This document shows, one piece after another, positions 8,394 through 60,550 of a stretch of 64,000 bases of DNA. The position numbers were made by a program, and so were the translations under genes. The notes under the pieces are model-generated. The model did not search any database and was not told the origin of the DNA. It saw only the letters and a list, made by a program, of their open reading frames with translations. Source of the DNA: Macrostomum lignano (lineage: Eukaryota); NCBI GenBank assembly GCA_002269645.1, contig NIVC01000702.1, forward strand, positions 248,001 through 312,000, written 5' to 3'. How positions within the stretch are numbered: the first letter of the stretch is position 1; every line of letters starts with the position of its first letter.

Positions 8394-9709
8394 CGAGGGG
8401 TGATCAAAAAGTTCTGCAAGTGACCTCACAACTCTGTGCTACAGCAGCCGAGGCGTCTAATCAGTGTCACATTCCCTTAAAGTACTTTCCACCACTATCT
8501 ATGCACCGTCGCATCCGTGTGCACCATGTCTGAAAGCAGTCATGGTACTCCGAAGTTGGTATACCCTGTAGAGCTGAATTTACCGCTTGGGCAAGGTCTT
8601 GCATGCGTGAAAACGGCCTCCCAGAAATGACGGATTTGATCCTCGGGAACAGCCAAAAGTCGCACGGTGCTAGGTCTAGAGAGTAGGGTGGATGGGCAGC
8701 AGCCGGACCCCTGCTGCTCCAGGTACGCCATGGTTGAGGCCGCTCTGTGCGGTGCCGCATTGTCATGGTGCAGCAGGAGTCGAGGTCCATGCCTGGTTCG
8801 CGCACGTTCCTGCCGCTCCTGCAGCACGCCTGGCAGAACAGTGTCTGTGTAGTACCTGGCAGTCACTGTGGCACCCGCTGGAAGGATGTTCACCGCTACA
8901 ACACCCTGAGAGTTGAAAAAAATGGTGAACATCCGCTTCGGACTGCGGAATCCGGTCTTCAGCACCTCAGGCCTTGGCTCATCTTCTGCTAGCCAGACCA
9001 TGTTGGACTGCTTATCCTTCATGGTAAAGAAGGAGATCCAACATTCGTCTCCTGTGATGACATCCGACAGTTGTCGTGGGCCGTGGGGCTCAAACATTTG
9101 CAGCCACAAGCGACAGATGCGCACCCTCTCTGCTTGCTGCTCCGGAGTGAGAAGATGGGGTACCCACCGAGCGCAGGTCTTTGTGCGGCCCAGTTGCTCA
9201 TGCATGATTTTATGGGCACTTCCATAGCTGACACCAAGCTCATAGGCAATGAATCTTAGCATAATGCTCCAATCCTCACGAATTATTGCATCGGCATGGG
9301 CCACGACATCTTCGGTCACAGATGTCCGGGGTCGGCCAGACCTCGGTTCGTCGTTGAAGCTGTCCCAGCCTTCCAAGAAATGGCGCAGCCAGCGGGCAAC
9401 CGTGTCAAATGATGGAGCAGAGTCAGCTAAAACATTCACCAGATCGGTGTGAGTCTCAGTCACTTTGCAACCAAGTTGCATGCGCATAAAGATATAGAAG
9501 CGAACACTGTTTTTTGATGTTTCCATCAGCTACTGAAAACACATGGAAAATATATGGCTGTGAAATTTTACTGGAGCACATTTGGAAGCCAAAAATGCAT
9601 ATATATATAGCAAACAGATATAGCCGCATATGTGTAAGTTTTTGGCTTTTGCCGATTCTATAACTAAAAGCTATAACAAAAGGTTGCAGAACTTTTTGAT
9701 CACCCCTCG
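8394..9709 (-). mobile_element. Mariner (D,D34D) DNA transposon, 1316 bp, in nAChR intron 1
   Basis: 26-bp perfect TIR CGAGGGGTGATCAAAAAGTTCTGCAA at both ends; TA duplication at 8392-8393 and 9710-9711; transposase motifs WVPHLL, ITGDE, HHDNA, YSLDLAPCDF. Confidence 0.96.
8467..9526 (-). pseudogene. Mariner transposase with frameshift near 8690-8712
   Basis: ORF 8540-9526 and ORF 8467-8805 join if one G and one C are restored in homopolymer runs (EQQGVRLLPHPPYS); restored spacing between 2nd and 3rd Asp is exactly 34. Confidence 0.88.
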
Positions 9710-22483: not shown

Positions 22484-24440
22484 TTAACTCTTATAGCACT
22501 TCGGCGTGTCGCGGGCTGCTCTTGGATGCCGTCTCTGAGCCACAGACTCTGCTTCTTGACTAGCGGACTGGCCGGCGTACTGGCCGGCGGCCTGGCCGGC
22601 GTACTGGCCGGCGGCCTGGCCGGCGTACTGGCCGGCGGCCTGGCCGGCTGACTGGCCGGTGGACTGGCCGGTGGACTGGCCGGCTGACTGGCCGGCGGAG
22701 TGGCCGGCTGACTGGCCAGTGAACTGGCCGGCTGACTGGCCGGCTGACTGGCCGGCGGACTGGCCGGTGGACTGGCCGGCTGACTGGCCGGCGGACTGGC
22801 CGGCTGACTGGCCAGCGGAGTGGCCGGCTGACTGGCCAGTGGACTGGCCGGCTGACTGGCCGGCGGACTGGCCGGCTGACTGGCCGGCTGACTGGCCGGC
22901 TGACTGGCCGGCGGACTGGCCGGCGGACTGGCCGGCGGACTGGCCGGCGGACTGGCCGGCGGACTGGCCGGCTGACTGGCCCGACGGTTCCATCAGAGGC
23001 CGCAGCTGGGTCACGTGCCGCATACAAGACTGCTGGCCTCGCCGTAGGATGCAGGTGTCGCCTCGAACCTCCTGCACCGTCCATGGCTGAGTTTCGAATG
23101 GCAGCTGCGTTTTTTTGCGTGCCTGCTGCTTACGAAGAACACTCGTGCCGGGAACGATGCGGTGCTCCTTTGCGGCCGTGCGCCTGTCGAACGCACTCTT
23201 CATCTGCTGCGTGTACCGCCGGTTCCAGTCCTGCACGGCTTCCTGGCTGACATCAGATGACTTCGGCTGCCTGCTGGCTGGGATTCCGTCGTTGATCGGC
23301 CTGCCCATGAGGAGCTCGGCCGGAGTCCGCCCAGTTGCTCGGTGAGGCGTTGTGCGGAACGCCAGAAGCCAGTCGTCCAGGGCCTCTCTCCAGTTCCGAC
23401 CTTCAGCGACAGCAGTCTTCACCACCTTCCCGATGCTGCGGTTGACACGCTCGGTGGCTCCGTTGGACTCCGGATGCAGCGGACAGATGAGACGATGATG
23501 AACTCCGTATCCGCTGAGGAAGCTGCGAAAGTCGGCAGAGTTAAAGGGCGGTCCGTTGTCCGTGATGACCTCAGCAGGGATGCCGTGCCGACCGAACAGC
23601 CGTCTCAGATGCGGTGTCACATTGCCGGCCATCGTTGACTGCATGATGTCGACTTCCGGGTACTTGGAGTACAGGTCCGTGGTGACCAGCAGCATCTGAC
23701 CTTGCACCGGGCCGTAGAAGTCCATGCCGAGCAGTTGCCAAGGTCCGTCCGGCATCTCCGTCGGCTTCAAAGGCGTCTGGTGCACGTGCGTGGCCGCTGC
23801 TTGGCAACCGACACAGCGCTTGACGAATACTTCGCAGTCGCTGCGCATCTTTGGCCACCAGAATTTGGTCTGCAGTCGCTTCAGGGTTCTGTCCGCACCG
23901 AGATGTCCCGTATGGGCCAGCTGCAGTATCGGTCTCCGCAGCGACTCGGGGACAACGATGAGATCTCCGCGGAGCAGAATTCCGTCGCTCTCGGAAAGTT
24001 CGCTGCTGCTGGACTTAAGTGCGCGTTGCACCGGGTCGAGCATGTTCCAGCTGCCGGTTCTGATCGCGCTGAGCGCAGCCTGGATCTCCGTGTCAGTCCT
24101 TGAAGAGTCTCGGATCTGCTGAAGGCTGAATCCCTTTGGCACGGCACCTGCTGACACAGCACTGACGAATGCCGCATCGATGACCTCGCCGATGTTTGGC
24201 CTGGGCTCCGGTAGCGGCTGGCGGCTCAGCAGATCGGCCGGATTGGCAGGTCCTGGCCGGTACAACAAAGTGAAGCGGAGGTGCTGGATGCGGAGGGCCA
24301 TCCGCTCTATGCGCGGCGGAGGACGAGACCCCGGCTTGAAGAGCGGCACAAGAGGTCGATGGTCCGTCACGACGGTGAAGTTCGGGTCGCCTGCCAGATA
24401 ATGCTCGAACTTCAGGCAGGCAAACTTGATGGCCAGCGCC
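22484..24440 (-). CDS. pol: RNase H C-terminus plus integrase with (AGQS)n tail
   Basis: EALAIKFACLKFEHYL...VTDHRPL; HHCC (HTGH...CVGC); DDE core GMDFYG, ITDNG, TERVN; 12-bp in-frame repeat at 22566-22980. Confidence 0.9.
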
Positions 24441-26685
24441 TCCCGTTGCGGTCGAAGAACGCCAGCGTGTCGGCTCCGGCGATGGCCTTCTTGATTGTGC
24501 TGAATGCTTCAGTGTGGCTGGCAGTCCATTCCCATGGCTGGCCCTTCTTGGTCAAATGGCGCAGCGGGGCTGACACGTCGGCGAATCTTGGGATGAATTT
24601 CGCCAGAAAGTTTGCGGTGCCGAGAAACGACCGAACATTTGAGACATTGGCGGGCTGCCGGAAGTCTTGCATTGCGCGGATTTTCTCAGCAGCTGGTTGG
24701 ATGCCCTTGGCTGACAGGTGCATCCCGAGAAATTCGACAGCCGGCTTGGCGAACTTGCACTTGTCCTTGTTCAGCGTGATGCCGAATTCGCGGAGGCGGT
24801 GAAGGCAGGCGTCCAGTCTGTCGTGGTGCTGCTTGGCATCCGCGGCGTAGACGATGACGTCGTCGTGGACCCACCTGACACCGTCGATGCCGCTGAGGAT
24901 GCCCAGCATGACCCGCTGAAGGATCTCCGAAGCGTTGGTGAAGCCCATACTCAGCCTCTTGAGTCGCATCAGTCCGAGCGGCGTGCTGAACGTGAAGAGA
25001 TGGCGGCTGTCCTCGTGCACCGGAATCTGGTAGAAGGCTTTCCGGATGTCCAGCTCGCTGAACAGCTTGGCTCCGGACATCTCCTCGGTGACCTCATCCA
25101 GGGTCGGAATCTGCTGCTTTTCGGGGACCACAAAGGCGTTCAGGTCGCGAAGGTCTTGGCAGATCCTAACGCCGCCATCGGTCTTGGGCACCACGACCAT
25201 GCGTGCCACCCAGGCGCTGGGACCCTTGACTGACTCGATGATGTCCTGCCGCTCCAGTGCCTTCAGCTCATCCACCACGGCTGCTCTCAGGTGCGCCGCC
25301 ACCCGGGATGGCGCGTGGCAGACTGGCACGGCGTTGTCTGACAGCTGCACTCTGACCTGTACACCTTTGATGCATCCGATGCCTTCGAAGACTGCTTTGT
25401 GCCGGTGTAGAATGTCCTGAAGCTGTGGCGACGGACGCGCCGAGTCGCTGTTCGAATTCACAACTTCCGTCGCATTGAACTCCGGGCGCTGAATTTTGAG
25501 AACTCCGAGCCTGAATGCGGGATCGCGACCGAGTATTGTGAGACCATCGCCATCCATGATGTGGAAGGGCACGACAGTGCTGACTGCTCCGACGCGAACT
25601 TCCAGGTCGGCGATTCCGAAGATGTTGAGTGGTGCAGAGCAGCCATAGGCTCTGACTTCCGATTCTGGAGTTCGCAGGTGAGGCCGATTGAGCGTCTTGA
25701 AAGTGCGGCTGCTCATAATGCTGCAGCTGGCACCGCTGTTGATCATCATCGAGAGCTGCCGACTTCCCACTTGGACTTTCAGCGAGACCTCAGCCGGGTA
25801 GGTGCCGTTTCTATGCAGGGTGAACACGTCTTCGCTGGCGACGGCGTCAGGGACCGTGCAGTCTGCGTTGGCGTGGATCTGCTGCCGGGCTCTGCTGCCG
25901 GCTGAGCGCGGTTGACGGCACGCCTTGGCCAGGTGATTTGGCTTACCGCAGTTATTGCAGATCCTGCCCCTGGCTGCGTCGCAGGTGGCGTGGCCACGCT
26001 CGCCGCATCGGTAGCAGGTGTTCATCTGGCTCGGCTTTGGTCTCGGTTCGCTGGCGGGTCCGCGTCTGTCTGTCGCTGTTTTGCTGCTCCTGGCCAGGCT
26101 AGCTACCTGGGCGTCGGTGGTCTTCTCCATCTCAGCAGCCTGCTCTTCCGCAGCCTCGAATGCTCTGACCTTCCGCAGGGCATCCTCCAGCGTGATGTCT
26201 GCTTCTTGGAGCAGCCGTCTGCGCAGTTTGTCGGAGGTGCATGTCGCGACGAGCTGGTCCCGGATGAGCGAGTCCCTCAGGTTTTCGAATTCGCACGGTT
26301 CGGCTGCCGCCCGCAGTCTGCTGTGCCAGGCCTCGATTTTCTCACCGGCTTGTTGGATGCACAGGCGAAATTGGTATCTCGCAAAAACGATGTTTTTCCT
26401 GTCGTCGAAATGGCGCTTCAGTCCGTCGAAGATGCTGGCCAATGTGTGCTCTTTCTCTTCGCCTTCAACCTGAGGCTTTGGTAGCTCGCGAACGATATCA
26501 GAGACCTCCTTTCCGGCAGTGTAGCAGAGCAGCTTGCACTTCTGGTTCTCATTTGCAACTCCGGACGCCTCGATAAAGTCTGTGAAGCGCGCTGCCCATT
26601 CGCGCCAACGCTTGCCAGCGTTGTGAGGGTCGTCAGAGATGACAAATGGTTCGGGGGGCGGTAGAGCGATGTAATTTGTGGCCAT
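24412..26685 (-). CDS. gag-pol: gag-protease-RT polyprotein (Mag-like), truncated in RNase H
   Basis: Two CCHC knuckles (CYRCGERGHATC, CNNCGKPNHLAKAC); protease MINSGA (Asp to Asn); RT LDIRKAFYQ, MGFTNAS, WVHDDVIV; frame lost after LAFFDRN. Confidence 0.9.
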   Translation of the reverse strand: MATNYIALPPPEPFVISDDPHNAGKRWREWAARFTDFIEASGVANENQKCKLLCYTAGKEVSDIVRELPKPQVEGEEKEHTLASIFDGLKRHFDDRKNIVFARYQFRLCIQQAGEKIEAWHSRLRAAAEPCEFENLRDSLIRDQLVATCTSDKLRRRLLQEADITLEDALRKVRAFEAAEEQAAEMEKTTDAQVASLARSSKTATDRRGPASEPRPKPSQMNTCYRCGERGHATCDAARGRICNNCGKPNHLAKACRQPRSAGSRARQQIHANADCTVPDAVASEDVFTLHRNGTYPAEVSLKVQVGSRQLSMMINSGASCSIMSSRTFKTLNRPHLRTPESEVRAYGCSAPLNIFGIADLEVRVGAVSTVVPFHIMDGDGLTILGRDPAFRLGVLKIQRPEFNATEVVNSNSDSARPSPQLQDILHRHKAVFEGIGCIKGVQVRVQLSDNAVPVCHAPSRVAAHLRAAVVDELKALERQDIIESVKGPSAWVARMVVVPKTDGGVRICQDLRDLNAFVVPEKQQIPTLDEVTEEMSGAKLFSELDIRKAFYQIPVHEDSRHLFTFSTPLGLMRLKRLSMGFTNASEILQRVMLGILSGIDGVRWVHDDVIVYAADAKQHHDRLDACLHRLREFGITLNKDKCKFAKPAVEFLGMHLSAKGIQPAAEKIRAMQDFRQPANVSNVRSFLGTANFLAKFIPRFADVSAPLRHLTKKGQPWEWTASHTEAFSTIKKAIAGADTLAFFDRNGRRWPSSLPA

Positions 26686-37414: not shown

Positions 37415-37438
37415 TTGGCGACCACGCCAGTTTTCCAC

Positions 37439-38563
37439 ATGTGGAATAACGACGACTACCTGGAACTACGTGGACGTCTCGTCGAGCGACGGCGCAACGC
37501 AGGCGACGAGGCAGCTTCCGTTTCTACAGAGTCTACGAACGCGTCCAACCCCTTCGTGTCGATGTCCACAGTCAGCGAAGCCACAAATCCCTTCCTCGTT
37601 GCCAACGACCTTCAGAGGGCACACCCGGCGGAAGTCTCAACCAACCCGTTCCTTGAAGACATCGACCAAGCGTCAGGGCAGGCCTCAGCAATTCAGCAGT
37701 ACGCCTATCCTCCAGCTCATGGATACGCAGCGCTGCCAGACTACAATCCCGGACCGGCTCTTCCGCCAGTACCTAAGCCTGCACCGTACAACGGTCGGGA
37801 GGATTTCGACGACTTTCTCATCAGGATCAGCGCCTATATTAGCCGGTTCCCAGGCATTCGAGACGCCGACAAGATCAACACCCTGACTGCGTTCCTCGGA
37901 CCGGCCTTTGCAACGTACACCACCTGGCTGGCGATCCAGTGTGCCTACGTCGGACTGCCACCGGGGACAACCCTGGACCAGCTACCTGGTGTCCGCTATG
38001 AGGGCCTCGTTGAACACCTCCGGTCTCGTCACGGCGGGGCCAAGAGTGCAGCGCTACTTCGCCGCGAGTTCCGTGCTCGGCAGCGTCGACCAGAGGAGAG
38101 CTTCGAAACGTACCTGACGGAGCTTCAACGGCTAGCTGCAAGGGCATACCCGGACCCAAGAGCTCAGGCTTACGTCCAACAGACAGTTAGCGAGCAGTTC
38201 ATGCATGGTCTCAATGACGGCTACGTCACCGAGCGACTACTGAATCAACCAACACCACCAAGCACTGTGGAGCAGGTTCTACGAATAGCCCAGCAGCTTC
38301 GAGAAACCCGGGCCTACATGGATGCTGGCCGTGGCGAAATCCAGCCCCAGCAACCGAGACCACCACAGAGCCAACTTTCAGCGCCACCGAAACCACTAAT
38401 GCCTCAGCAGCCTGCCTCATCTGGCGGTCGAGGACAGCAACGACAGCAATCACCGGCTAGTTCCAACTGTTTCGGCTGCGGTCAGCCGGGCCACATCCGA
38501 CGCAATTGCCCAAACGCCGAGGGGGCTGGTTCACGAGGCCAGCACCGGCCCTCTCAGCACTAA
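37439..38563 (+). CDS. gag: Gag with one CCHC zinc knuckle
   Basis: First ATG 37439; PAPYNGREDFDDF, RQRRPEESFETY, CFGCGQPGHIRRNC. Confidence 0.92.
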   Translation: MWNNDDYLELRGRLVERRRNAGDEAASVSTESTNASNPFVSMSTVSEATNPFLVANDLQRAHPAEVSTNPFLEDIDQASGQASAIQQYAYPPAHGYAALPDYNPGPALPPVPKPAPYNGREDFDDFLIRISAYISRFPGIRDADKINTLTAFLGPAFATYTTWLAIQCAYVGLPPGTTLDQLPGVRYEGLVEHLRSRHGGAKSAALLRREFRARQRRPEESFETYLTELQRLAARAYPDPRAQAYVQQTVSEQFMHGLNDGYVTERLLNQPTPPSTVEQVLRIAQQLRETRAYMDAGRGEIQPQQPRPPQSQLSAPPKPLMPQQPASSGGRGQQRQQSPASSNCFGCGQPGHIRRNCPNAEGAGSRGQHRPSQH

Positions 38564-38570
38564 CGCATTC
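38509..38570 (+). promoter_or_regulatory. Candidate -1 ribosomal frameshift signal
   Basis: C CCA AAC heptamer in correct X XXY YYZ phase just after the CCHC, followed by GC-rich sequence able to pair (GCTGG/CCAGC; GAGGG/CCCTC). Confidence 0.6.
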
Positions 38571-41500
38571 GGCCTCAACACCACGCCTCAGCAGCTGCCA
38601 GCCTGGCCAGGTGCGCTTCGTCACAGCGCGCATCCTTAGACGACGGCGCCACTGTCTGATCGACACCGGGGCAGAGGTGTCCTGCATCAGCGATGACATA
38701 TGTAAGAAAGCTAGGCGGCGGCTGCAGCCCAGCAGCATCATCATAAGAGGCGTGGATGGCAACCTACAGTCTGTGCTGGGCGAGACTACTTTGGCAGTGA
38801 CTCTGGGAACCGTACAAGTCCATCATCGTTTCGTCGTACTCGAGAAGCTTCACCCGACGTCCGTCATCCTGGGCTGTGACTTCCTCAGTGAACACGACGT
38901 CTCGGTCCATCTCCAAGCCGGTTGCATCACTTTCAACAGCCTAGGCGTGTCGATTCCAGCTCGAAAAAGTAAAGAGGCAGCACAGACCTGCAAGCTCGTA
39001 TCAGCGGCCTCCGTGCAGCTGCAGCCAGGGGAGCGCTGGATAATCCCCGTTAAACCAGCAAAGTCGGCCTCGTGGACGCGATCGGAGTGTCCAGGAGTCG
39101 TCACCGGCACAAGATCACAGGGGCTCCTGGTGGGTCGTTGTGTTGCCAAGCTGGTCGAGAGAGGCATGGGCCTAGCAGTCATCAACGTCGACGACCACAC
39201 GGTCAACATCAGCGACGGCGACATTGTTGGCATCTTTTCCCCGCTAGGAAGTCAGCCATTCGTTCAGCAATCGGGTGCCGCTGGCAGCACGGCGGCGACG
39301 GCCGCTGGCAGCACGGCGGCGACGGCCACTGGCAGCACGGCGGCGACGGCCGCTGGCAGCACGGCGGCGACGGCCGCTGGCAGCACGGCGGCGACGGCCG
39401 CTGGCAGCACGGCGGCGACGGCCGCTGGCAGCACGGCGGCGACGGCCGCTGGCAGCACGGCGGCGACGGTCGCGGTCAGCACGGCTACATCAACAACAGC
39501 TTTAGCGACGGACTTACCTCGCACCAACTGGCTGAACGACGTGCACATCGAAAGCTCTATCTCCGTCGAAGAGCAACAGTCGGTCAAGGATTTGCTGTTA
39601 GAGTTCAGCACCGTTTTTGCATCCCCTGGCAATGCTGGTCGAACTGCAGTCCTGCAGCATCGCATCGACACCGGCGGGCAAGGCCGATCCGGCAGGGTTT
39701 GCGGCGTGCAGCGCGTCCAGTCATCGACAAGCAGGCCGAATTGATCGACGACATGCTGACCAAAGGAGTAATCCGGCCGTCTTCATCGCCTTGGGCTTCG
39801 CCAATCGTGCTTGTTCGTAAGAAGGACGGGACAGCGCGCTTTTGCTTAGACTATCGACTGCTCAATGAGGTCACCAAGCCGGACGCTTTTCCAATTCCGA
39901 GGATCGACGACACACTCGATGCGCTGCAAGGCAACGCCTACTTCTCGGCACTCGATCTGGAGAGTGGCTACTGGCAGGTTGAGGTCGAGGAGCGCGACAA
40001 AGAGAAAACTGCTTTCATCTGCCATCAAGGCCTCTTCGAGTTCAACGTCATGCCGTTTGGTCTGCGCAATGCCCCGGCAACCTTTCAACGCCTCATGCAG
40101 CTGGTGCTCCAAGGCCTGACCTGGCAAGCGTGCCTGGTCTTCATCGACGACGTTATTGTCATGGGCCGGACTATCGAGGAGCACAACTATCGGCTGCGGG
40201 CGGTGTTCGAGCGGCTGCGGGACGCGAACCTACGCTTGAAGCCATCTAAATGCCATTTCGCCAACACCACGATGATCGTCTTGGGTCATCGAGTTTCCAA
40301 GTCGGGTATCACCGTCGACGAGTCAAAGACTGCTGCGATCCGAGACTGGCCTACACCCCGAACTTCCAAGGAGGTCAAGAGCTTCCTAGGTCTCGCAGCC
40401 TACTATAGACGGTTCATTCGGGATTATTCAAAGATCGCCGAGCCGCTACGACGCCTGACGGTTCCGACAGAAAGGTTTCAGTGGACGTCCAAGGCCCAAG
40501 AAGCATTCGACCAACTGAAGGCAACACTGACCTCTGCTCCAATCCTCGCCTTCCCGGATACTAGTGCGACCAGCTCGGAGTTCATTCTGGACACTGACGC
40601 CAGCGACTGCGCCATTGGTGCGGTACTCTCTCAACTGCAGGCGGGCGAAGAACGAGTCATCGCGTACTCCAGCAGAGCACTAACAAAAGCCGAGCGCAAC
40701 TACTGTGTAACGAGGCGGGAGCTGCTGTCCGTCGTTGAGCATGTCAGGAAGTTCCGGAATTACCTGCTGCCTCGGAAGTTCACCGTGCGGGTCGATCATC
40801 AGTCTCTAACGCACCTGCTGACATTCAAGGAGCCCGAAGGTCAACTCGCGCGGTGGCTGCAGACGCTAGACGAGTTCGACTTCAGAGTACTCTATCGGCC
40901 GGGCCGTCAACACAACAACGCCGATGCGCTGTCCCGTCAGCAGCAGCGCTGTACCAACCAGTGTCGGGTGTGTCGACCAACAAATGAGACCACCAGCAGG
41001 ACGACATCCTCGGTTGCCTGCCAGACCGACGCCAACAGTGATGCCGCCGCTGCCGCCCAGATCAACGCAGCGACCATCAAGCTAGTGTCGACGGCTACCG
41101 ACGAAGCTGTTCAGACCGACAATGTGCATGTCTGCGTCGGCACCGTGCCATCAAGGCGCAAGCAAATCCATCAGCCCCGGTCGGACGACAGCGAAGAAAG
41201 CAGCAGCAGCGAGGACGACACCAACGAAGATGAATCCGCAGCGCCAGCGGCAGACAACAGGCCACCGACGCTACGTATGCTTCAGCTGCAGGATCCGGTT
41301 ATCAGTCCGGTGTTCCGACTGCTGGCCGACGGCAAGACTAGGTTTACCGACCGACAACGCGACCGAGTACCGCCGGAGAGCCTGGTGCTGGCGCAGAAGG
41401 TGCATGACTTGTGTTTCGTGAACGGTACACTGCACAGGCTGGTCAACACAAAGCCAGTACCCGTCATTCCCCGCTGCCGACAACGCGAATTTGTCGACGA

Positions 41501-42620
41501 GATTCACAACGTCGGCCACCTGGGCGAAGTCAAGACGCTGGCCAGCCTAAAGACGCGTTGCTACTGGCCAAAAATGTCGGAGAGCGTCCGGTTGGCCGTT
41601 CGGTCATGCCAGGTTTGCCAGCGGGCAAAGACTCCGGTTATCAAGCGGGCGCCGCTACAGTCCATCACTGCAGGGTTTCCAATGCAGCGTGTCGGGTTCG
41701 ACATTGTCAAGGTCGGCGCTTCCAGAAACGGCAACGATCGGATCCTGAGCATCGTCGACTACTTCAGCAAGTGGACGGAGCTGGTGCCGATTCCGGACGA
41801 GAAGGCGACGACAATTGCCAAGGCCCTCTTCAACAACTGGATCTCCAGGTGGGGTGCTCCGCATATTCTCCACTCCGACCGCGGCAAGAGCATCGATGGC
41901 CGCATCATTCGCAGTCTCTGTACACTATTGGAGGTCGACAAGACTCGAACGTCGGGCTATCATCCTCAATGTGACGGCCTCGTGGAGAGATTTCATCGGA
42001 CACTCCATCAGATGTTGCGCTGCCACCTTCAAACTGTCGATCCGCTGGACTGGGAGGACGCCCTGCCGTACTGTCTCCTAGCCTATCGAAGCAGCATCAG
42101 CGCGACGACCGGATTTTCCCCACATTTCCTGATGACGGGCCGGGAGGTGGTTCTGCCATTGGACGTTGTCTATCGGTCCCCAGAGCCTCCATCCGTCGTC
42201 GGCCAGTACGCAGTAGAGACCATTCAACGACTGCAGGACGCCTTTGACGCTGTGCGGAGGTCAACTGGCGCGGCTCAACGACGGCAGAAGCGGTACTACG
42301 ATCTGAAAGCCCAGAAGCGCAAGTTTCGCACCGGCGATCTAGTGTGGCTGTTCGTTCCGCCTGCTGTGCTGTCCAGGACCAACTGTCTGCCTCCGAAGCA
42401 TCAATCACCGTGGACAGGCCCATTTAAAGTCATGCGCAAGACATCACCTGTCAACTACTTGGTGCGGCCGATCAATTACACGGACGGGGAGATCAAGGGG
42501 CGCGTCGTGCATGTCAACAAGTTGAAGCGAGCGTGTCTGCAACGGACCCAGTCTGCTCAGCGTGCTGATCAGGACGCCAGTAGTGACGATGAAGGGCAAC
42601 TTGTTGACGCTGAGGACTGA
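38509..42620 (+). CDS. pol: Pol (PR-RT-RH-IN), -1 frame to gag, one 1-nt frameshift near 39677
   Basis: LIDTGA protease; LDLESGYWQ, FGLRNAP, FIDD; LDTDAS RNase H; HNVGH...CQVC; GFD/HSDRG/VERF; WTGPFKV. Confidence 0.92.
39280..39475 (+). repeat. 24-bp in-frame repeat encoding (AAGSTAAT)n in pol
   Basis: ~8 copies of GCCGCTGGCAGCACGGCGGCGACG. Confidence 0.92.
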
Positions 42621-47224: not shown

Positions 47225-47665
47225 ATGTCGGGGCCGCTCACCCCAAATATTTTTATGAGCGGCGCATCGATGGGTACAAAAGTGCTCATCCGGTATCGCC
47301 TGCTCGAGTGCAACATCAAACTGATGGGCGAAATCGGCGTCGATAACGTCTTCGTCACAAGCGTCGGCCCGGCTGCGGACGAAGTGATGGACTTCCGTCT
47401 GCAGGTGTCGGTCTACGATCAGGTTTTTGTACGATCGGCATTCGACTTGGCTGAACGAGGCGCCGACATGCTGCTGGAGGCGCTGGTGATGCGGTCTGTT
47501 GGCAAAGTCAAGACCCTGGTCACCAGGCTGACCGGAAGCTGCCAGCAGAGCCAGAGCAGCGGCGGTCAAATCGAGCTGGTCGGTCGCTTAAAAAAGGTGT
47601 CGGAAGAAGAAGTGAAGCAGAGCATATCAGACGCCTGCCGGCAGCTTAAGGTTGGCTCCAACTGA
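47225..47665 (+). CDS. Intronless 146-aa protein of unknown family
   Basis: GCCGCCATCATG context, upstream in-frame TGA, strong C/G third-position bias, globular alternating beta/alpha pattern. Confidence 0.7.
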   Translation: MSGPLTPNIFMSGASMGTKVLIRYRLLECNIKLMGEIGVDNVFVTSVGPAADEVMDFRLQVSVYDQVFVRSAFDLAERGADMLLEALVMRSVGKVKTLVTRLTGSCQQSQSSGGQIELVGRLKKVSEEEVKQSISDACRQLKVGSN

Positions 47666-48271: not shown

Positions 48272-49007
48272 CAGAGGCATTGCCGTGGATTTTATGGTGG
48301 GTGGGGGACAAAGCCAAGAATTGTACATCTACATGTACACGACTAAATTTATACATGTAACATTATTTTCAGAATAGAAATTGTCAGCGATCATATTAGC
48401 TCCGCAGGCACTCATTTTAGCGCCGCAGGCACTCATTTTGGCGCCGCAGGTATTCCTTTTAGCGCCGCAGGCACTCATTTTAGCGCCGCAGGCACTCATT
48501 TTGGCGCCGCAGGTATTCCTTTTAGCGCCGCAGGCACTAATTTTGGCGCCGCAGGCACTCATTTTGGCGCCGCAGGTATTCCTTTTAGCGCCGCAGGCAC
48601 TCATTTTAGCGCCGCAGGCACTCATTTTGGCGCCGCAGGTATTCCTTTTAGCGCCGCAGGCACTCATTTTAGCGCCGCAGGCACTCATTTTAGCGCCGCA
48701 GGCACTCATTTTAGCGCCACAGACACTCATCTTAGCGCCACAGGCACTCATTTTGGCGCCGCAGGCACTAATTTTGGCGCCGCAGGCACTCATTTTAGCG
48801 CTGCAGGCACTCATTTTAGCGCCGCAGACACTCATTTTGGCGCCGCAGACACTCATTTTAGCGCCACAGACAGTGTTTTCGTTTGCAGGCGCTATGTTTT
48901 GTCGCCCTGAAGCAAAATTTTTGATTTCCATAACAGGTCAACAAAGGTGGGGTGGGGGACAAAGCATTGGCATGTCCCCCCTGTCCCCCCCGGCGGCAAC
49001 GCCCCCG
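48272..49007. mobile_element. Probable MITE containing a 21-bp tandem array
   Basis: Degenerate TIR CAGAGGCATTGCCG / CGGGGGCGTTGCCG; subterminal GGGGGACA...TGTCCCCC; no clean TSD. Confidence 0.45.
48400..48870. repeat. 21-bp minisatellite
   Basis: Unit GCGCCGCAGGCACTCATTTTR, ~22 copies. Confidence 0.93.
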
Positions 49008-49410
49008 CTAAAATAAATATTATGGAAACTATAGCTATAGTGAAAGTAAAGGACGCATTTGACATTAACAACCATCAACTCAGTCAATATCGTCTTCGAT
49101 CAGCGAGGCTGGTGAAAAGCTGGTCACTATGGTGCGAAGATGTCGAGTAAAGTTGCGCAATTCAGACAACGCGCGTGGCTGCTCAACTTTCTGCAATTCA
49201 AGAAATTTAAATTCCTAGCTATAGTGATGTAGCTAGTTAAGCAAGGAAAGTGTCTATAGGTAAAAGGCCTTCGAGTCAAAATTTTATTCTGCGTTGTTTT
49301 TAAACAAATATTTCTAAGCTGTGCTATAGAAGTTCAGACAGAGCAACAGAATCGAGCTCGTGGCATGTTTTTTTCCGGTGTATTTTGTTAAAACTAATGT
49401 AATACTGCCA

Positions 49411-49733
49411 GGGGGTGTGCCAGCGACCCAGGCTCGATTCCAATTGCAGTCACATTAATTTGGGGCTGAATTGGAATCTCGGCTTGGCTCTGCTCGTGCA
49501 ATTAACGGCCTTGAGGGCCAACCCCCCAAGGCACAGTGAAGTGTACATGCCTAACGATAATCTAAAGTTAGGGCCGCTGTACACTCCTGGGTGAGTGTGT
49601 GCCTGCGTACGTATCCGCGCGCTTGTATGCCTGCTCAGGGGAGTCGGCGGAATGGGCAGTAATGCCTCTCGCCGGTTGTGTGCCTATGTCGCTTAAAGTG
49701 CGCCAGGGTGCACACAACCCCCTGCGTCTAATA
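49411..49733 (+). mobile_element. SINE-like / 5'-truncated non-LTR insertion
   Basis: 15-bp direct repeat AATGTAATACTGCCA on both flanks (49396-49410, 49734-49748); B-box-like GGCTCGATTCC; second partial copy at 18.5 kb. Confidence 0.65.
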
Positions 49734-49752
49734 AATGTAATACTGCCATTTT

Positions 49753-50094
49753 TGTAGCCTATAGTGGTGTCGCGACTTTCCTTAGTCATTTCTTAGTTCA
49801 CCTTCACTTGTCTCTGTTTACTCTGTTTTCTCTCTCTCTGTCTAGCTCAATCTTGTTATTCTTATCTCTCTTTCCCTTGCTGCCTTCTGATTGGCTCTCC
49901 ATTCTCGCCTCTCTCTTTAGTCGCGCAGTCCAACCCCCTCTCCTTATTATTCTGGACTCAACCCCGCCCCCCCAAAGTTAAATGTTCTATAAATATATCG
50001 GTTTGGGCCCTGCGCCCAAATTTTCAATTAACTCAATTAACTTATTCAATTTAACTCCAAGTTACTCTCTAGTTTTTCTCTACATGGCGCCCAA
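49753..50094 (+). mobile_element. Possible orphan LTR with PBS
   Basis: TGTAG...CTACA ends, internal ATTGG and TATAAATA, followed by TGGCGCCCAA (tRNA-Lys-type PBS); no partner LTR or TSD seen. Confidence 0.3.
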
Positions 50095-50306
50095 TCTCTA
50101 GTTTTTAGGCTTAGTCTTATTTTCTCTACACAAGTGGTTACAGCGTCGGAGTCGATTCGGGTTCAATTTTTTACCCACTCGGAACAATTTGTGTCCTTGA
50201 CATAAATCTGCATTGCTTCACTTCACCCAGCTGTAAAATTGGTGCCAGCATTAGCTGGGGTAATATTGAGGGTGTGTGGCGACCGCCCAGTCCTTGGACT
50301 GAACAG

Positions 50307-50369
50307 TCAGTCGTACGCAGCCTTCAGATGCGCAGCGCAATAGCGCAGTGGGTTGCACATCTGGCCCAA
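50307..50369 (-). CDS. cGAS-like/Mab-21 gene, exon 3
   Basis: 89-nt intron with (AAT)n and CTTAC branch-like site; CCCCAG| phase 0; LGQMCNPLRYCAAHLKAAYD-stop; three exons total 1655 nt, one short of 552 codons. Confidence 0.65.
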   Translation of the reverse strand: MGQMCNPLRYCAAHLKAAYD

Positions 50370-50391
50370 CTGGGGCAGGTGTAAGTTGTTA

Positions 50392-50431
<40 letters not shown>

Positions 50432-50458
50432 TATAAAAACAAGTTGCAAATCACTCAC

Positions 50459-51698
50459 TCGATAGTTGATCAGCATTGGCAGCAAAGGAGTGCTTTGAAG
50501 CATTTCGGTGAACACATTTGCAACACTGGGCACTGTTCCATCGCGCATCGCTGCAATCAGTTTGGCCAGAGGCGTCAGCTCATTCTCAAGGGTGCAGGCC
50601 ACGATTTTGCCATCACGAAGCTGCAGCCTCAACGGGTTTGGCTCTTGCAACATTCCCAGGATCGCTGATTTTGCTCCATCAAACTGAACCTCCGGTCCCT
50701 CTGCGGGACATCGCATCCCCTTGCTTATTGAGAACTGGAATGCCTCTGCGGCAGCATCCAACGATTTACCAACCCTGAGATATGCAAGCGCTTTAAGCCA
50801 ATCTTTGCTGACTCTGACGCAATCCGGAAGTTCGGAAATTTGCTTTAACAGTTTCTTCAAGTGGCTATCTAACGAATCTTCTGTTGGAACTTCAGACACG
50901 GCCACGTGGCGTCTCGAACTTCTCCGAAAGCGCTGATGATGGCATCCCGCTCGGTCCCAGTGGCGGCAGCAATATGGACTTCGGCAAGCAGATGCAAGGA
51001 GAATAAGGCGTGAAACTGCATCCCTCCGACTGGGAGTTCTGTTAGACTGTCCGCAAACTTGCCGATTTCCTCGTGAATTTTTACTAGAGTTTGCTTCACG
51101 GAAGCGACGATCTCAGCCTTTTTCTTGTGATCCTTCTTGAAGTACACGTTTGCGTCTCTGAGAAAGAAATGCTTCATGCACGCGTCTTCGGAGTCTGTGC
51201 TCTCCATCATTTCTACGAGAATTTCCAGCGAGGTACGCACAAGCTCGATTAGGTGGCTGCCCGTTTGCCATTTTTCCACCGGAGTTTCGTCAAGCATGTA
51301 GAACAGCAGGTTCTTGGCAATGTACGTTTTCAACCCGATATCGCTCAGCACTCGCTTGATAAGAAACTTGACGATGATGAAAAACTGGCCCTGAATGTCC
51401 GTGAGGTGTTGCATCACGGATCTCTCGAGCAGCGTCGTGCTGACCCGCATGCAACTGCCTGCAGGGAGATTCGGTGGTGACGCGGCTACCGCGTGGCACT
51501 TGGGTGAGTCGCCGAAGACCTCCGCTCGGAGCAGCTCAATGATCCGCTCTGGCATGCATGATGCTCGCCCTGTGCGAGTCCTGTAGCCGTCCTGCAGCAG
51601 CTCAATTGAAGGATAGGAGCAGCAGTCCAGAGCTACGATAATGTCGAAAGCATCAACCATGCCCAGCTTGGACTTCTCAATGCTGAAGTTCGGCTTAA
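50459..51698 (-). CDS. cGAS-like/Mab-21 nucleotidyltransferase, exon 2 (contains a 1-nt frameshift)
   Basis: TTTGCAG|TT acceptor in frame; FDIIVAL third Asp; RVSTTLLERSVM, LKTYIAKNLLFY, MKHFFLRDANVY Mab-21 motifs; TPR-like WLKALAYLRVGKSLDAAAEAF after the shift; CGA|GTGAGT donor. Confidence 0.83.
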
Positions 51699-51844
51699 CT
51701 GCAAATTTTTGTAAGAGAGCATCCTTTTTTAGCTTTATTGCTTTAACAGGTTTATTTTTTCTGTTTTCATTTAATGCCTACGTGACAGAAAGGCTTTCAA
51801 ACACGCTGCATGGCCTCTAAAGGTCCTATATTATGAGTGCGAGT

Positions 51845-51975
51845 GCTAAAGTCCCTTATGCTGGCACCCCTGGTGCTAAAGCCCCTTACGCTGGCGCCCC
51901 TTGTGCTAAAGCCTCTGGTGCTAAAGCCCCTTGGTGCTAAAGCCCCTAGTGCTAAAGCCCCTTGGTGCTGGCCTT
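51845..51975. repeat. Short copy of GCTGGCGCCCC/GTGCTAAAGCCC minisatellite family
   Basis: In intron 1 of the Mab-21 gene. Confidence 0.75.
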
Positions 51976-52054
51976 GTAATTAACAATACCCAATAAAAAA
52001 TCTCTGGATCTACTACCGCCTAGCTTCTCCAACTTTTAACGATAATCCACTTAC

Positions 52055-52406
52055 ATCCACTTCGGAAGAACACGTGACCGTCTTTATACTCAGCCAGCAT
52101 GTGCTCGGCCTGACAATTCGCTTCGAGTTGCGCATCAACTACAGGATGTATCGGCTGCCGACCGGACATAACTGTGACGTCAATATCGCTTGATGGCTCA
52201 ATGCTGCCGTCCAGCTTATCCAGACAGCTGCCCCATCCGTCAGCGTAGCTGCCAAACACGCGCAGACTGTCGGATTTCAACAGGAAGCTGAGCACGTCCT
52301 CCATACCGCTGGCCATTGCCGATTGAATTCGTGCATTAGCAGAACTGAAGCCGGCTTTGTACATCAAGCCGGACAGCCAGATACTCAGGGACTCTTCTTC
52401 GTCCAT
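52055..52406 (-). CDS. cGAS-like/Mab-21 nucleotidyltransferase, exon 1
   Basis: ATG 52406; RVFGSYADG...SSDIDVTV (GS...DxD catalytic motif); T|GTAAGT phase-1 donor. Confidence 0.85.
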
Positions 52407-54856: not shown

Positions 54857-56237
54857 CAAGGGCCGGACAACTTTTTGTCTCAAGGGCCAGATTGAGAACC
54901 TAGAGCATGACTGCGGGCCAGGGGAGGGGGGTTAGGATAGGGAATAGAGAAGAGAAATAGGAGAAAGGAGAAAAGATGAGACAAATAGGGAAGGAGAGAG
55001 CAAATAGGAGAGGAGATAGGAGGGAAGGGAGAGGAAAAGGGAGATTAGAGGAGAGAAGAGAGGAGAAGAGAAGAGTGAGGAGACTACGTAGGCTCGTAGG
55101 AGAGTGTAGAGGAGAAGAGAGAAGATAGGAGAGAAGAGAGGAGAGGAGAGAAGAGAGGAGAGAAGAGAGGAGAGGAGAGGAGAGAAGAGAGGAGAGGAGA
55201 GAGGAGAGGAGAGAAGAGAGGAGAGGAGAGGAGAGAGGAGAGGAGAGAAGAGAGGAGAGGAGAGAAGAGAGGAGAGGAGAGAAGAGAGGAGAGGAGAGAA
55301 GAGAGGAGAGAGGAGAGGAGAGAAGAGAGGAGAGGAGAGAATAGAGAAGAGAGGAGAGAGGAGAGGAGAGAAGAGAGGAGAGGAGAGGAGAGGAGAGAGG
55401 AGAGGAGAGAAGAGAGGAGAGGAGAGAGGAGAGGAGAGGAGAGAAGAGAGGAGAGGAGAGAAGAGAGGAGAGAAGAGAGGAGAGGAGAGGAGAGAAGAGA
55501 GGAGAGGAGAGAGGAGAGGAGAGAAGAGAGGAGAGGAGAGAAGAGAGGAGAGGAGAGAAGAGAGGAGAGGAGAGAAGAGAGGAGAGGAGAGAAGAGAGGA
55601 GAGGAGAGGAGAGAAGAGAGGAGAGAAGAGAGGAGAGAAGAGAGGAGAGGAGAGAAGAGAGGAGAGAGGAGAGAGGAGAGGAGAGAAGAGAGGAGAGGAG
55701 AGGAGAGGAGAGAGGAGAGGAGAGAAGAGAGGAGAGGAGAGAGGAGAGGAGAGGAGAGAAGAGAGGAGAGGAGAGAAGAGAGGAGAGGAGAGGAGAGAAG
55801 AGAGGAGAGGAGAGAAGCGAGGAGAGGAGAGAAGCGAGGAGAGGAGAGAAGAGAGGAGAGGAGAGAAGAGAGGAGAGGAGAGAAGAGAGGAGAGGAGAGA
55901 AGAGAGGAGAGGAGAGAAGAGAGGAGAGGAGAGAAGAGAGGAGAGGAGAGAAGAGAGGAGAGGAGAGAAGAAAGGAGAGGAGAGAAGAGAGGAGAGGAGA
56001 GAAGAGAGGAGAGGAGAGAAGAGAGGAGAGGAGAGAAGAGAGGAGAGGAGAGAAGAGAGGCGAGGAGAGAAGAGAGGAGAGGAGAGAAGAGAAGAGAGGA
56101 GAGAAGAGAGGAGAGGAGAGAAGAGAAGAGAGGAGAGAAGAGAGGAGAGGAGAGAAGAGAGGAGAGGAGAGAAGAGAGGAGAGGAGAGAAAAGAGGAGAG
56201 GAGATGTGACCCGCGGGCCGGAGTTTGCCGACTCTTG
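54857..56237. mobile_element. Probable hAT-type MITE containing a GA-rich array
   Basis: Ends CAAGGGCCGGACAAC / CAAGAGTCGGCAAAC; subterminal GGGCCAGATT, GCGGGCCA, CCCGCGGGCCGGA; 8-bp flanks GTTAAAAA/TTTAAAAT (6/8). Confidence 0.5.
54940..56200. repeat. GA-rich array (GAGGA/GAGAA higher-order units)
   Basis: Direct reading. Confidence 0.95.
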
Positions 56238-56879: not shown

Positions 56880-59280
56880 TCAGTGAAACCCAATAACACC
56901 TCAGTGTCTTCCAGGAAACTTCAGTGCCTTCCAGAAAACCCCAGTGTCTTCTATGAAACCTCAGTGTCTTCCAGAAAACCTCAGTGTCTTCCAGGAAACC
57001 TCAGTGTCTTCCAGGAAACCTCAGTGTCTTCCAGGAAACCTCAGTGTCTTCCAGGAAACCTCAGTGTCTTCCAGGAAACCTCAGTGTCTTTCAGAAAACT
57101 TCAGTGTCTTCCAGAAAACCTCAGTGTCTTCCAGGAAACCTCAGTGTCTTCCAGGAAACCCCAGTGTCTTCCAGGAAACCCCAGTGTCTTCCAGGAGACC
57201 TCAGTGTCTTCCGGGAAACCTCAGTATCTTCCAGGAAACCTCAGTGTCTTCCAGAAAACTTCAGTGTCTTCCAGGAAACCTCAGTGTCTTCCAGAAAACC
57301 CCAGTGTCTTCCAGGAAACCTCAGTGTCTTCCAGGAAACCTCAGTGTCTTCCAGAAAACTTCAGTGTCTTCCAGGAAACCTCAGTGTCTTCCAGAAAACC
57401 TCAGTGTCTTCCAGCTCAGTGTCTTCCAGGAAACCTCAGTGTCTTCCAGTTCAGTGTCTTCCAGGAAACCTCAGTGTCTTCCAGGAAACCTCAGTGTCTT
57501 CCAGGAAACCCCAGTGTCTTCCAGAAAACTTCAGTGTCTTCCAGGAAACCTCAGTGTCTTCCAGAAAACCTCAGTGTCTTCCAGAAAACCTCAGTGTCTT
57601 CCAGCTCAGTGTCTTCCAGGAAACCTCAGTGTCTTCCAGCTCAGTGTCTTCCAGGAAACCTCAGTGTCTTCCAGTTCAGTGTCTTCCAGGAAACCTCAGT
57701 GTCTTCCAGCTCAGTGTCTTCCAGGAAACCTCAGTGTCTTCCAGCTCAGTGTCTTCCAGGAAACCTCAGTGTCTTCCAGCTCAGTGTCTTCCAGGAAACC
57801 TCAGTGTCTTCCGGGAAACCTCAGTATCTTCCAGGAAACCTCAGTGTCTTCCAGAAAACTTCAGTGTCTTCCAGAAAACCCCAGTGTCTTCCAGGAAACC
57901 TCAGTGTCTTCCGGGAAACCTCAGTATCTTCCAGGAAACCTCAGTGTCTTCCAGAAAACTTCAGTGTCTTCCAGGAAACCTCAGTGTCTTCCAGAAAACC
58001 CCAGTGTCTTCCAGGAAACCTCAGTGTCTTCCAGGAAACCTCAGTGTCTTCCAGAAAACTTCAGTGTCTTCCAGGAAACCTCAGTGTCTTCCAGGAAACC
58101 TCAGTGTCTTCCAGCTCAGTGTCTTCCAGGAAACCTCAGTGTCTTCCAGAAAACCCCAGTGTCTTCCAGGAAACCTCAGTGTCTTCCAGGAAACCTCAGT
58201 GTCTTCCAGAAAACTTCAGTGTCTTCCAGGAAACCTCAGTGTCTTCCAGGAAACCTCAGTGTCTTCCAGCTCAGTGTCTTCCAGCTCAGTGTCTTCCAGG
58301 AAACCTCAGTGTCTTCCAGCTCAGTGTCTTCCAGCTCAGTGTCTTCCAGCTCAGTGTCTTCCAGGAAACCTTAGTGTCTTCCAGGAAACCTCAGTGTCTT
58401 CCAGCTCAGTGTCTTCCAGCTCAGTGTCTTCCAGGAAACCTCAGTGTCTTCCGGAAAACCTCAGTATCTTCCAGGAAACCTCAGTGTCTTCCAGAAAACT
58501 TCAGTGTCTTCCAGGAAACCTCAGTGTCTTCCAGAAAACCCCAGTGTCTTCCAGGAAACCTCAGTGTCTTCCAGGAAACCTCAGTGTCTTCCAGAAAACC
58601 TCAGCGTCTTCCGGGAAACCTCAGTGTCTTCCAGAAAACCTCAGTGTCTTCCAGGAAACCTCAGTGTCTTCCAGGAAACCTCAGTGTCTTCCAGAAAACC
58701 CCAGTGTCTTCCAGAAAACCCCAGTGTCTTCCAGGAAACCTCAGTGTCTTCCAGGAAACCCCAGTGTCTTCCAGAAAACCCCAGTGTCTTCCAGAAAACT
58801 TCAGTGTCTTCCAGGAAACCTCAGTGTCTTCCAGAAAACCCCAGTGTCTTCCAGGAAACCTCAGTGTCTTCCAGAAAACCCCAGTGTCTTCCAGAAAACT
58901 TCAGTGTCTTCCAGGAAACCTCAGTGTCTTCCAGGAAACCTCAGTGTCTTCCAGCTCAGTGTCTTCCAGGAAACCTCAGTGTCTTCCAGAAAACCCCAGT
59001 GTCTTCCAGGAAACCTCAGTGTCTTCCAGGAAACCTCAGTGTCTTCCAGAAAACTTCAGTGTCTTCCAGGAAACCTCAGTGTCTTCCAGGAAACCTCAGT
59101 GTCTTCCGGGAAACCTCAGTGTTTTCCAAGAAACTCAGTGTTTTCCAGGAAACCCGGTGTTGTCTAAAAAACCTTTGTGTCTTCAAGGAAGCCTCAGCGA
59201 TTTCCAAGAAACCCTGTGTTTTCTAAGAAACCCGATGTTTTCTAAGAAATCCTGTGTTGTCCAGGAAACCCAGTGTCTTC
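56880..59280. repeat. 2.4-kb 20-bp/14-bp intronic minisatellite
   Basis: Units CCTCAGTGTCTTCCAGGAAA and CTCAGTGTCTTCCAG variants; source of the 890-aa spurious + ORF. Confidence 0.96.
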
Positions 59281-59293
59281 CACTCAAACTCAC

Positions 59294-59764: not shown

Positions 59765-60230
59765 TAAACCACGATCTACCCTAGAACCTCCCTATCTACC
59801 CTAGAACCCCACTATCTACCCTAGAACCCCATTATCTACCCTAGAACCCCACTATCTACCCTAGAACCCCGCTATCTACCCTAGAACTCCGCTATCTACC
59901 CTAGAACTCCGCTATCTACCCTAGAACCCCATTATCTACCCTAGAACCCCACTATCTACCCTAGAACCCCACTATCTACCCTAGAACCCCGCTATCTACC
60001 CTAGAACCCCACTATCTACCCTAGAACCCCGCTATCTACCCTAGAACCCCACCACTATCTACCCTAGATACCCACTATCTACCCTAGAACCCCGCTATCT
60101 ACCCTAGAACCCCACTATCTACCCTAGAACCCCACTATCTACCCTAGAACCCCACCACTATCTACCCTAGAAACCCACTATCTAACCTAGAATCCTACTG
60201 TCTAACCTAGAGCCCCTGTGTATAACCTAG
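59765..60230. repeat. 20-bp intronic minisatellite
   Basis: Unit CTATCTACCCTAGAACCCCR. Confidence 0.93.
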
Positions 60231-60550
60231 AACCTTAGTATCTCACCTATATTTAACTATTTTACCTTAAAGCTCAAATACCTACCTTGGAAACTTGCAA
60301 AAATCTACCTCAAAACCTACCATCCTACCTTAGAATTAGAAATTGACTATCTCCCCTAAAACTGTTTTAAAACTGTCTACTGCTAAGCTACTAATTCCAC
60401 TACAAAAATATGAATTTAGTAGTGGAATTAATAAAATTAGTAGTGGAATTAATAATAAATATAAATCCACTACAAAAATATGCACTTGCGTAAAATATAT
60501 ATAAATTGATTTTAATCCAGAATTCATAATTTTAAATTTTTGTATCGTAC

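Follow-up and report, generated by a model that had tools for sequence, protein, structure and literature searches.

cGAS-like receptors (cGLRs) were delimited by Li et al. (2023) through the motif h[QT]GS X8-20 [DE]h[DE]h X50-90 h[DE]h, with homology across both lobes of the protein and AlphaFold similarity as further criteria (PMC9980059). The same survey already curated cGLRs of the flatworm Macrostomum lignano, cloning five of them (Table S3 #89-93), and described Mab21L1/2/3 as being without a predicted functional active site (PMC9980059). Here we analyse a gene of this type on the minus strand of a 64,000-nucleotide (nt) stretch of M. lignano DNA (contig NIVC01000702.1, positions 248,001 to 312,000; hereafter the window, whose own numbering is used throughout). 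One of the proteins in that survey, #91 (PAA57558.1, BOX15_Mlig007108g1; P0003 below), is 48% identical to the protein of the window gene over 95% of the length; literature searches on the locus tag and on cGLRs of Macrostomum gave no paper on this locus.

The product is predicted to be a Mab-21/cGAS-like nucleotidyltransferase with a complete cGLR active-site pattern and a cGAS fold, an assignment that is well supported by its motifs and by structure modelling. We consider it probable that the locus is a member of a large cGLR radiation specific to M. lignano and that the copy in the window is truncated. Because a 1-nt deletion at codon 381 strips the conserved C-terminal extension of the family from its product, this copy is most likely a defective allele or homeolog.

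The best database match of the gene is P0001 (BOX15_Mlig010774g2), a 567-amino-acid (aa) M. lignano protein with 99% identity, which is carried by a public copy of the locus on contig NIVC01001984.1 (L001). L001 and the window are 98.99% identical across 5.5 kb and remain syntenic further out. Comparison of the two copies gives the following features:

52055..52406, minus strand: exon 1, from translation and splice-site reading; codons 1-117 and the first base of codon 118.
51699..52054, minus strand: intron 1, 356 nt, GTAAGT...TTGCAG; identical to L001 along its entire length.
50459..51698, minus strand: exon 2, 1240 nt; carries the third catalytic Asp, the Mab-21 C-lobe and the greater part of the family-specific tail, with the frame broken inside.
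50908..50909, minus strand: frameshift at codon 381, 1 nt missing relative to L001, as shown by aligning the two copies and translating each in three frames.
50869..50871, minus strand: premature TAG in the shifted frame; the product is 393 aa, ending ...GEVRDATWPCLKFQQKIR.
50459..50908, minus strand: tail-coding part of exon 2, out of frame yet open for 150 codons (HVAVSEVPTEDS...LINYR); 98.7% identical to P0001 residues 382-531.
49191..50458, minus strand: intron 2, 1268 nt, GTGAGT...TTGCAG; splice sites read directly.
49080..49190, minus strand: exon 3, coding KVEQPRALSELRNFTRHLRTIVTSFSPASLIEDDID and the TGA stop (49082-49080), from tblastn with P0001 residues 532-567; acceptor and stop read directly.

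Exon 1 starts with an ATG at 52406, matches P0001 residues 1-119 at 98% identity (tblastn) and codes for the N-terminal helices together with G52-S53 (52253-52248) and D74-I-D76 (52187-52179); the D136 codon, at 51645-51643, lies in exon 2. The same kind of search places the 3′ end of exon 2 at 50459, after LINYR and with its GTGAGT donor, and the last 36 residues at 49190-49083. A preliminary description of this stretch, made from its letters, had given a spliced product of about 551 aa ending at 50307. That model read through the exon 2 donor into intron 2, translating the (AAT)n microsatellite at 50392-50431 as poly-Asn, and did not reach the true last exon at 49190-49080. The three exons total 1703 nt, 1 nt fewer than the 1704 nt of 568 codons: when intact the protein has 567 aa, and the stretch as written codes for 393 aa. 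Intron 1 also contains a 15/30-nt tandem repeat at 51843-51969, and Rfam gave no matches within 47-54 kb.

At the break site, GAC GCT CAC GTG GCC in L001 corresponds to GAC GCC ACG TGG CC in the window, so that the reading frame of the window copy is interrupted by the 1-nt deletion and closed by the stop at 50871-50869. Upstream of the frameshift, the 393-aa product retains the whole catalytic core (about residues 1-345). A short intron that would rescue the frame was considered among the GT...AG pairs of 50870-50940; the lone frame-restoring candidate, 41 nt long, was dropped in favour of a 1-nt deletion because of its poor GTGGCC donor and because of the alignment to L001.

The alternative that speaks most directly against a truncated copy is that the missing nucleotide is an assembly or consensus error and that the locus codes for an intact, fully functional 567-aa cGLR, which we regard as possible but rather unlikely. 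Single-base indels are common in long-read assemblies; here, moreover, the frame downstream stays open, the final exon is intact, as are both splice sites, and the near-identical public copy has an uninterrupted open reading frame (ORF). However, UniProt contains a separate model, P0002, with the same shifted peptide ATWPCLKFQQKI, and this model departs from the window by G52S, H215N and D307E. The deletion is thus shared by two different sequences at the least, which favours a real variant over a random consensus error. In addition, the deletion site is not a homopolymer run, and the deletion falls within 7 differences in 70 nt, resembling a real haplotype tract.

Between window and L001 there are 10 substitutions in 1703 nt of exon and 2 in 1624 nt of intron (Fisher p = 0.039), and 7 of the 11 exon differences cluster at 50846-50914, in the 70 nt around the deletion, a clustering that, judged from the two sequences, may reflect a gene-conversion tract or relaxed constraint. 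Position 52 is Ser in P0001, whose ORF is intact, and in P0002, and Gly in the frameshifted window copy (window 52251-52253 versus L001:10154); P0001 and P0002 are the sole retrieved relatives with SS in place of GS, among 84 signature matches and 49 full-length cores. With the window frameshifted and the public copy bearing G52S, each copy thus carries a different potentially damaging change. Such a pattern is consistent with immune-type genes undergoing birth-and-death turnover in a genome that duplicated recently; hidden tetraploidy has been described for M. lignano (PMC5704211, PMC12869490).

The spliced product reads R-V-F-G52-S53, then 20 residues, S-D74-I-D76-V and later, in exon 2, A-F-D136-I-I-V, and it contains the Mab-21-type motifs MRVSTTLLER, GLKTYIAKNLLFYMLDE, GLKTYIAKNLLFYMLDETP and CMKHFFLRDANVY. 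Set against the published cGLR motif, this gives V-F-G52-S53, X20, D74-I-D76-V, X57, F-D136-I, with F at the [QT] position as the lone departure. The preliminary description had recognized the GS, the DxD, the third Asp (FDIIV), the Mab-21 helical motifs and the 20-aa spacing between GS and DxD, and on these points it stands: GS (52-53), DID (74-76) and D136 align to those of curated cGLRs, the helical motifs are conserved across 49 paralogs and the spacing is the same in the spliced product. That spacing is the upper limit of the X8-20 of Li et al., and compared with bivalve-type cGLRs the loop carries a 10-residue insertion with an invariant Trp.

Among the 49 full-length paralog cores, retention is 47/49 for G52, 48/49 for S53, 47/49 for D74, 46/49 for D76 and 44/49 for D136, which places the catalytic motifs among the most conserved columns of these paralogous domains; mean column identity is about 39% in a non-redundant subset (21 of the 49 cores). 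A clade signature, GS[FY]x[DE]GW[GA]...SDxD, was found in 84 retrieved sequences. This conservation of the active-site motifs is the main argument that enzymatic function has probably been retained.

Several lines of evidence support the family and fold assignment. First, Pfam Mab-21_C was found in 12 of 12 family members (best E = 7.9e-7); the window protein had no PF03281 match in the Pfam scan. Second, a profile of 21 diverse paralog cores searched against the PDB retrieved Sp-cGLR1 (8gjy; E = 2.9e-7), about 38 different sequences of cGAS chains (39 with a cGAS fusion; E from 6e-6 to 9e-3) and MAB21L1 (E = 2.4e-3), with no unrelated protein under E = 0.3; a smaller family profile (A3) gave no match in the PDB where this broader one succeeded, and the single window protein gave a marginal match to Sp-cGLR1. 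In that last search, phmmer paired DAFD with the DEFD of Sp-cGLR1 (2.3 bits), a pairing that we dismissed as spurious in view of the hhalign pairings to bivalve-type cGLRs.

Third, hhalign aligned the family to eight bivalve-type cGLRs of Li et al. (Table S3) over 172 columns with a probability of 99.4% (E = 2.6e-21), the alignment beginning exactly at the D136 strand and pairing D136 with their invariant third Asp. N-terminal slices compared with the same proteins placed GS on GS and SDID on SDxD, weakly (E = 0.0018, probability 15%), and against four coral cGLRs the A3 profile aligned in a single segment, RVSTTLLER with RLSFSLAET (E = 0.11). For the N-lobe, HMMER found no sequence match to Sp-cGLR1, Cv-cGLR1 or cGAS.

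Fourth, an AlphaFold2 model, built on P0001 (99% identical to the window protein) rather than on the window protein itself, reached a mean predicted local distance difference test score (pLDDT) of 69.7 and a predicted template modelling (TM) score of 0.73. Foldseek comparison of this model with the PDB returned cGAS, Cv-cGLR1 or MAB21L1 exclusively among its best 50 matches, with E from 7e-6, target TM scores of about 0.5 and about 360-415 aligned columns (about 380); MAB21L1 stands at ranks 37, 44 and 50. The two-lobed cGAS fold that the preliminary description had proposed is thus matched by the model, and the predicted structure indicates homology to cGLR and CD-NTase enzymes.

If these predictions hold, the intact 567-aa protein would be a two-lobed nucleotidyltransferase of the Mab-21/cGAS fold that binds nucleoside triphosphates and two metal ions through G52-S53, D74, D76 and D136. 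An activating signal would lead it to produce a putative nucleotide second messenger, to be read by a receptor. The window copy would keep the ancestral active site and the whole catalytic core, having lost the conserved extension.

A number of observations weigh against this interpretation. The residue preceding GS is F (V in most paralogs), where the published motif has Q or T. By itself, the window protein reaches 20.5 bits against PF20266 (E = 5e-4), below the gathering cut-off of 24.1, a cut-off that paralogs such as P0017 (31.1 bits) pass. In the structure model the nucleotidyltransferase N-lobe is of low confidence, with a pLDDT of 38-64 at residues 50-140. None of the cloned M. lignano proteins #89-93 is named among the 15 selected active enzymes of Li et al., and their Table S5 gives 0 cGLR and 0 STING for six flatworms, all of them cestodes, M. 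lignano not being listed (PMC9980059).

A further alternative, which we think distinctly unlikely, is that the protein is an active nucleotidyltransferase of another chemistry, making OAS-like linear 2′-5′ oligonucleotides or nucleotidylating protein or RNA, with the long GW loop reshaping the acceptor site. The spacing of GS...G...SDxD is like the generic Pol-beta nucleotidyltransferase pattern of OAS and terminal uridylyltransferases (TUTases). The 20-residue loop is at the limit of the cGLR motif, and its invariant D/E-G-W-G residues are absent from cGAS. Structure and profiles point the other way, however: no OAS or TUTase chain is among the best 50 Foldseek matches, the sequence profiles match cGAS, cGLR and Mab21 only, the C-lobe aligns to curated cGLRs at the probability given above, and neither the window protein nor the 12 members scanned had a Pfam match to the OAS family.

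The probable cGLR radiation to which we assign the locus is large. An initial search gave 12 matches: 11 named ones, all from M. lignano, and P0003, whose sequence is that of M. lignano PAA57558.1. A profile search of 1.84 billion representative proteins then gave 248 proteins with E<=1e-3, of which 71 had E<=1e-30, and the relatives form at least 71 clusters at 50% identity. The named members among the sampled strong matches are all from M. lignano, and the weaker matches include a bivalve protein. Many paralogs carry long N-terminal ankyrin arrays. P0065 has ankyrin repeats and a caspase domain (Peptidase_C14, E = 2.7e-25) C-terminal to its cGLR core, an architecture that, by its domain content, is a sensor-effector fusion inside the cGLR family; P0163, in the same 90%-identity cluster, is named a caspase p20 protein by its source (P0065 and P0163 are M. 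lignano BOX15_Mlig012150g1 and BOX15_Mlig018330g1, P0065 being the one scanned).

Least plausible, and in our view a slim chance, is that the protein serves, in development or structurally, as a Mab-21-like scaffold without catalytic activity, as proposed for MAB21L1/2. MAB21L1 is indeed among the structural (ranks 37, 44 and 50) and profile matches (E = 2.4e-3), and the 15 enzymes named active include no cGLR of M. lignano. Against this, GS, DxD and the third Asp are among the best-conserved columns over the 49 paralogs, which would be unexpected of non-catalytic proteins; Mab21L1/2/3 have, according to Li et al., no predicted functional active site; and at least 71 clusters with ankyrin and caspase fusions look immune, not developmental.

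Beyond the core lies the tail, residues about 338 to 567 (roughly 230 aa), which in the structure model is helical with one beta hairpin. The preliminary description had given a helical C-terminus of about 170 aa with TPR-like (tetratricopeptide repeat-like) character; the helices are borne out, and the hairpin, the greater length and the shifted frame of the tail in the window were absent from that account. The TPR assignment found no support, as 34-residue helix-turn-helix units were recovered neither by profile nor by fold: the tail matched no Pfam family at E<=1, its sequence profile gave no PDB match below E = 0.063, and a tail-only model (pLDDT 64.8) had a best Foldseek E of 0.27 with TM below 0.2 and no TPR protein among 50 matches. 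Most strong family matches reach profile positions 410-455; the first 70-110 tail residues, including an [IL]PDCA...L.A.A..K.G motif, are conserved family-wide, and the distal tail is variable among members. Conservation of these first residues argues that they are part of the family module and not a variable specificity element; the suggestion of the preliminary description that the C-terminal module may set ligand specificity found no support.

At the level of the locus the result is modest: a corrected gene model and two near-identical copies with different lesions. Of greater interest is the family. Its radiation is very large and lineage-restricted, in a phylum otherwise said to have none of these receptors, and it has its own loop insertion, an unrecognized C-terminal domain, and ankyrin and caspase fusions. 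We suggest tentatively, and consider it unlikely on balance, that flatworms mostly lost cGLRs, yet that M. lignano expanded a private clade of at least 70 divergent lineages, marked by a unique Trp-bearing insertion in the activation loop and by a new conserved C-terminal domain and frequently fused to ankyrin arrays or a caspase. This clade would signal through a non-STING route if STING is lacking from the species, for example by coupling directly to fused or partner effectors such as caspases; the window gene would then be among the simplest stand-alone members of the clade. As M. lignano is tractable to transgenesis, the living worm offers a way to determine ligand, product and receptor.

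The neighbourhood of the gene in the window is rich in repeats and mobile elements. A Ty3/gypsy-type long terminal repeat retroelement has its coding region at 22484-26685 (minus strand), with gag zinc knuckle, protease and reverse transcriptase (24412-26685) and integrase (22484-24370). A second coding region of this type lies at 37415-42620 (plus strand), with gag at 37415-38563, protease at 38506-39744 and reverse transcriptase-RNaseH-integrase at 39072-42620. A 328-aa ORF at 8540-9526 (minus strand) has mariner-type transposase helix-turn-helix and partial DDE domains. Minisatellites occupy 48391-48869 (21 nt x23), 55047-56204 (17 nt x68), 56898-59282 (20 nt x124) and 59769-60234 (20 nt x23), and these repeats account for the long ORFs in several frames at 54.9-59.5 kb, which are artefacts. 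A 146-aa ORF at 47225-47665 (plus strand) matches a called gene in L001 (14725-15165) and no Pfam family. In L001 a C-type lectin gene (Pfam Lectin_C) adjoins the cGLR at L001:1-5959; by synteny, the corresponding region of the window lies beyond about 56.4 kb on the minus strand. This neighbour is possibly another immune-type gene.

Placed beside the known systems, the flatworm family shares with MAB21L1 (5eog/5eom) the fold and a weak profile match, and differs in retaining a predicted functional active site, which Mab21L1/2/3 lack according to Li et al. With Sp-cGLR1 (8gjy), Cv-cGLR1 (8gjw) and vertebrate cGAS it has in common the two-lobed fold (Foldseek), the order of catalytic residues and profile matches confined to the C-lobe (E = 2.9e-7 for 8gjy, about 1e-5 for cGAS), whereas identity is 12-15%, the GS-to-DxD loop is much longer and a tail of 230 aa is added. 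The bivalve-type cGLRs (Crassostrea, Mizuhopecten; Table S3 #81-83 and #94-98) resemble it from the third-Asp strand through the C-lobe and in the pattern GSxxEG...SDxD; unlike them, the flatworm clade has the 10-residue, Trp-bearing insertion between GS and DxD and its own C-terminal extension.

The closest described system is #91 of Li et al. (P0003), which comes from the same species and clade and shares the signature (GS[FY]xDGWG...SDxD), the motifs of the C-lobe and the C-terminal extension, including the [IL]PDCA...L.A.A..K.G motif; it differs in being a separate paralog, and the window copy in being frameshifted. The preliminary description had taken the gene for an uncharacterized invertebrate sensor: the host is indeed an invertebrate, M. 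lignano, and this member is indeed uncharacterized, whereas its clade had already been recognized (Li et al. 2023). The clade is thus already catalogued as cGLRs, and the corrected gene model and the frameshift are newly reported here.

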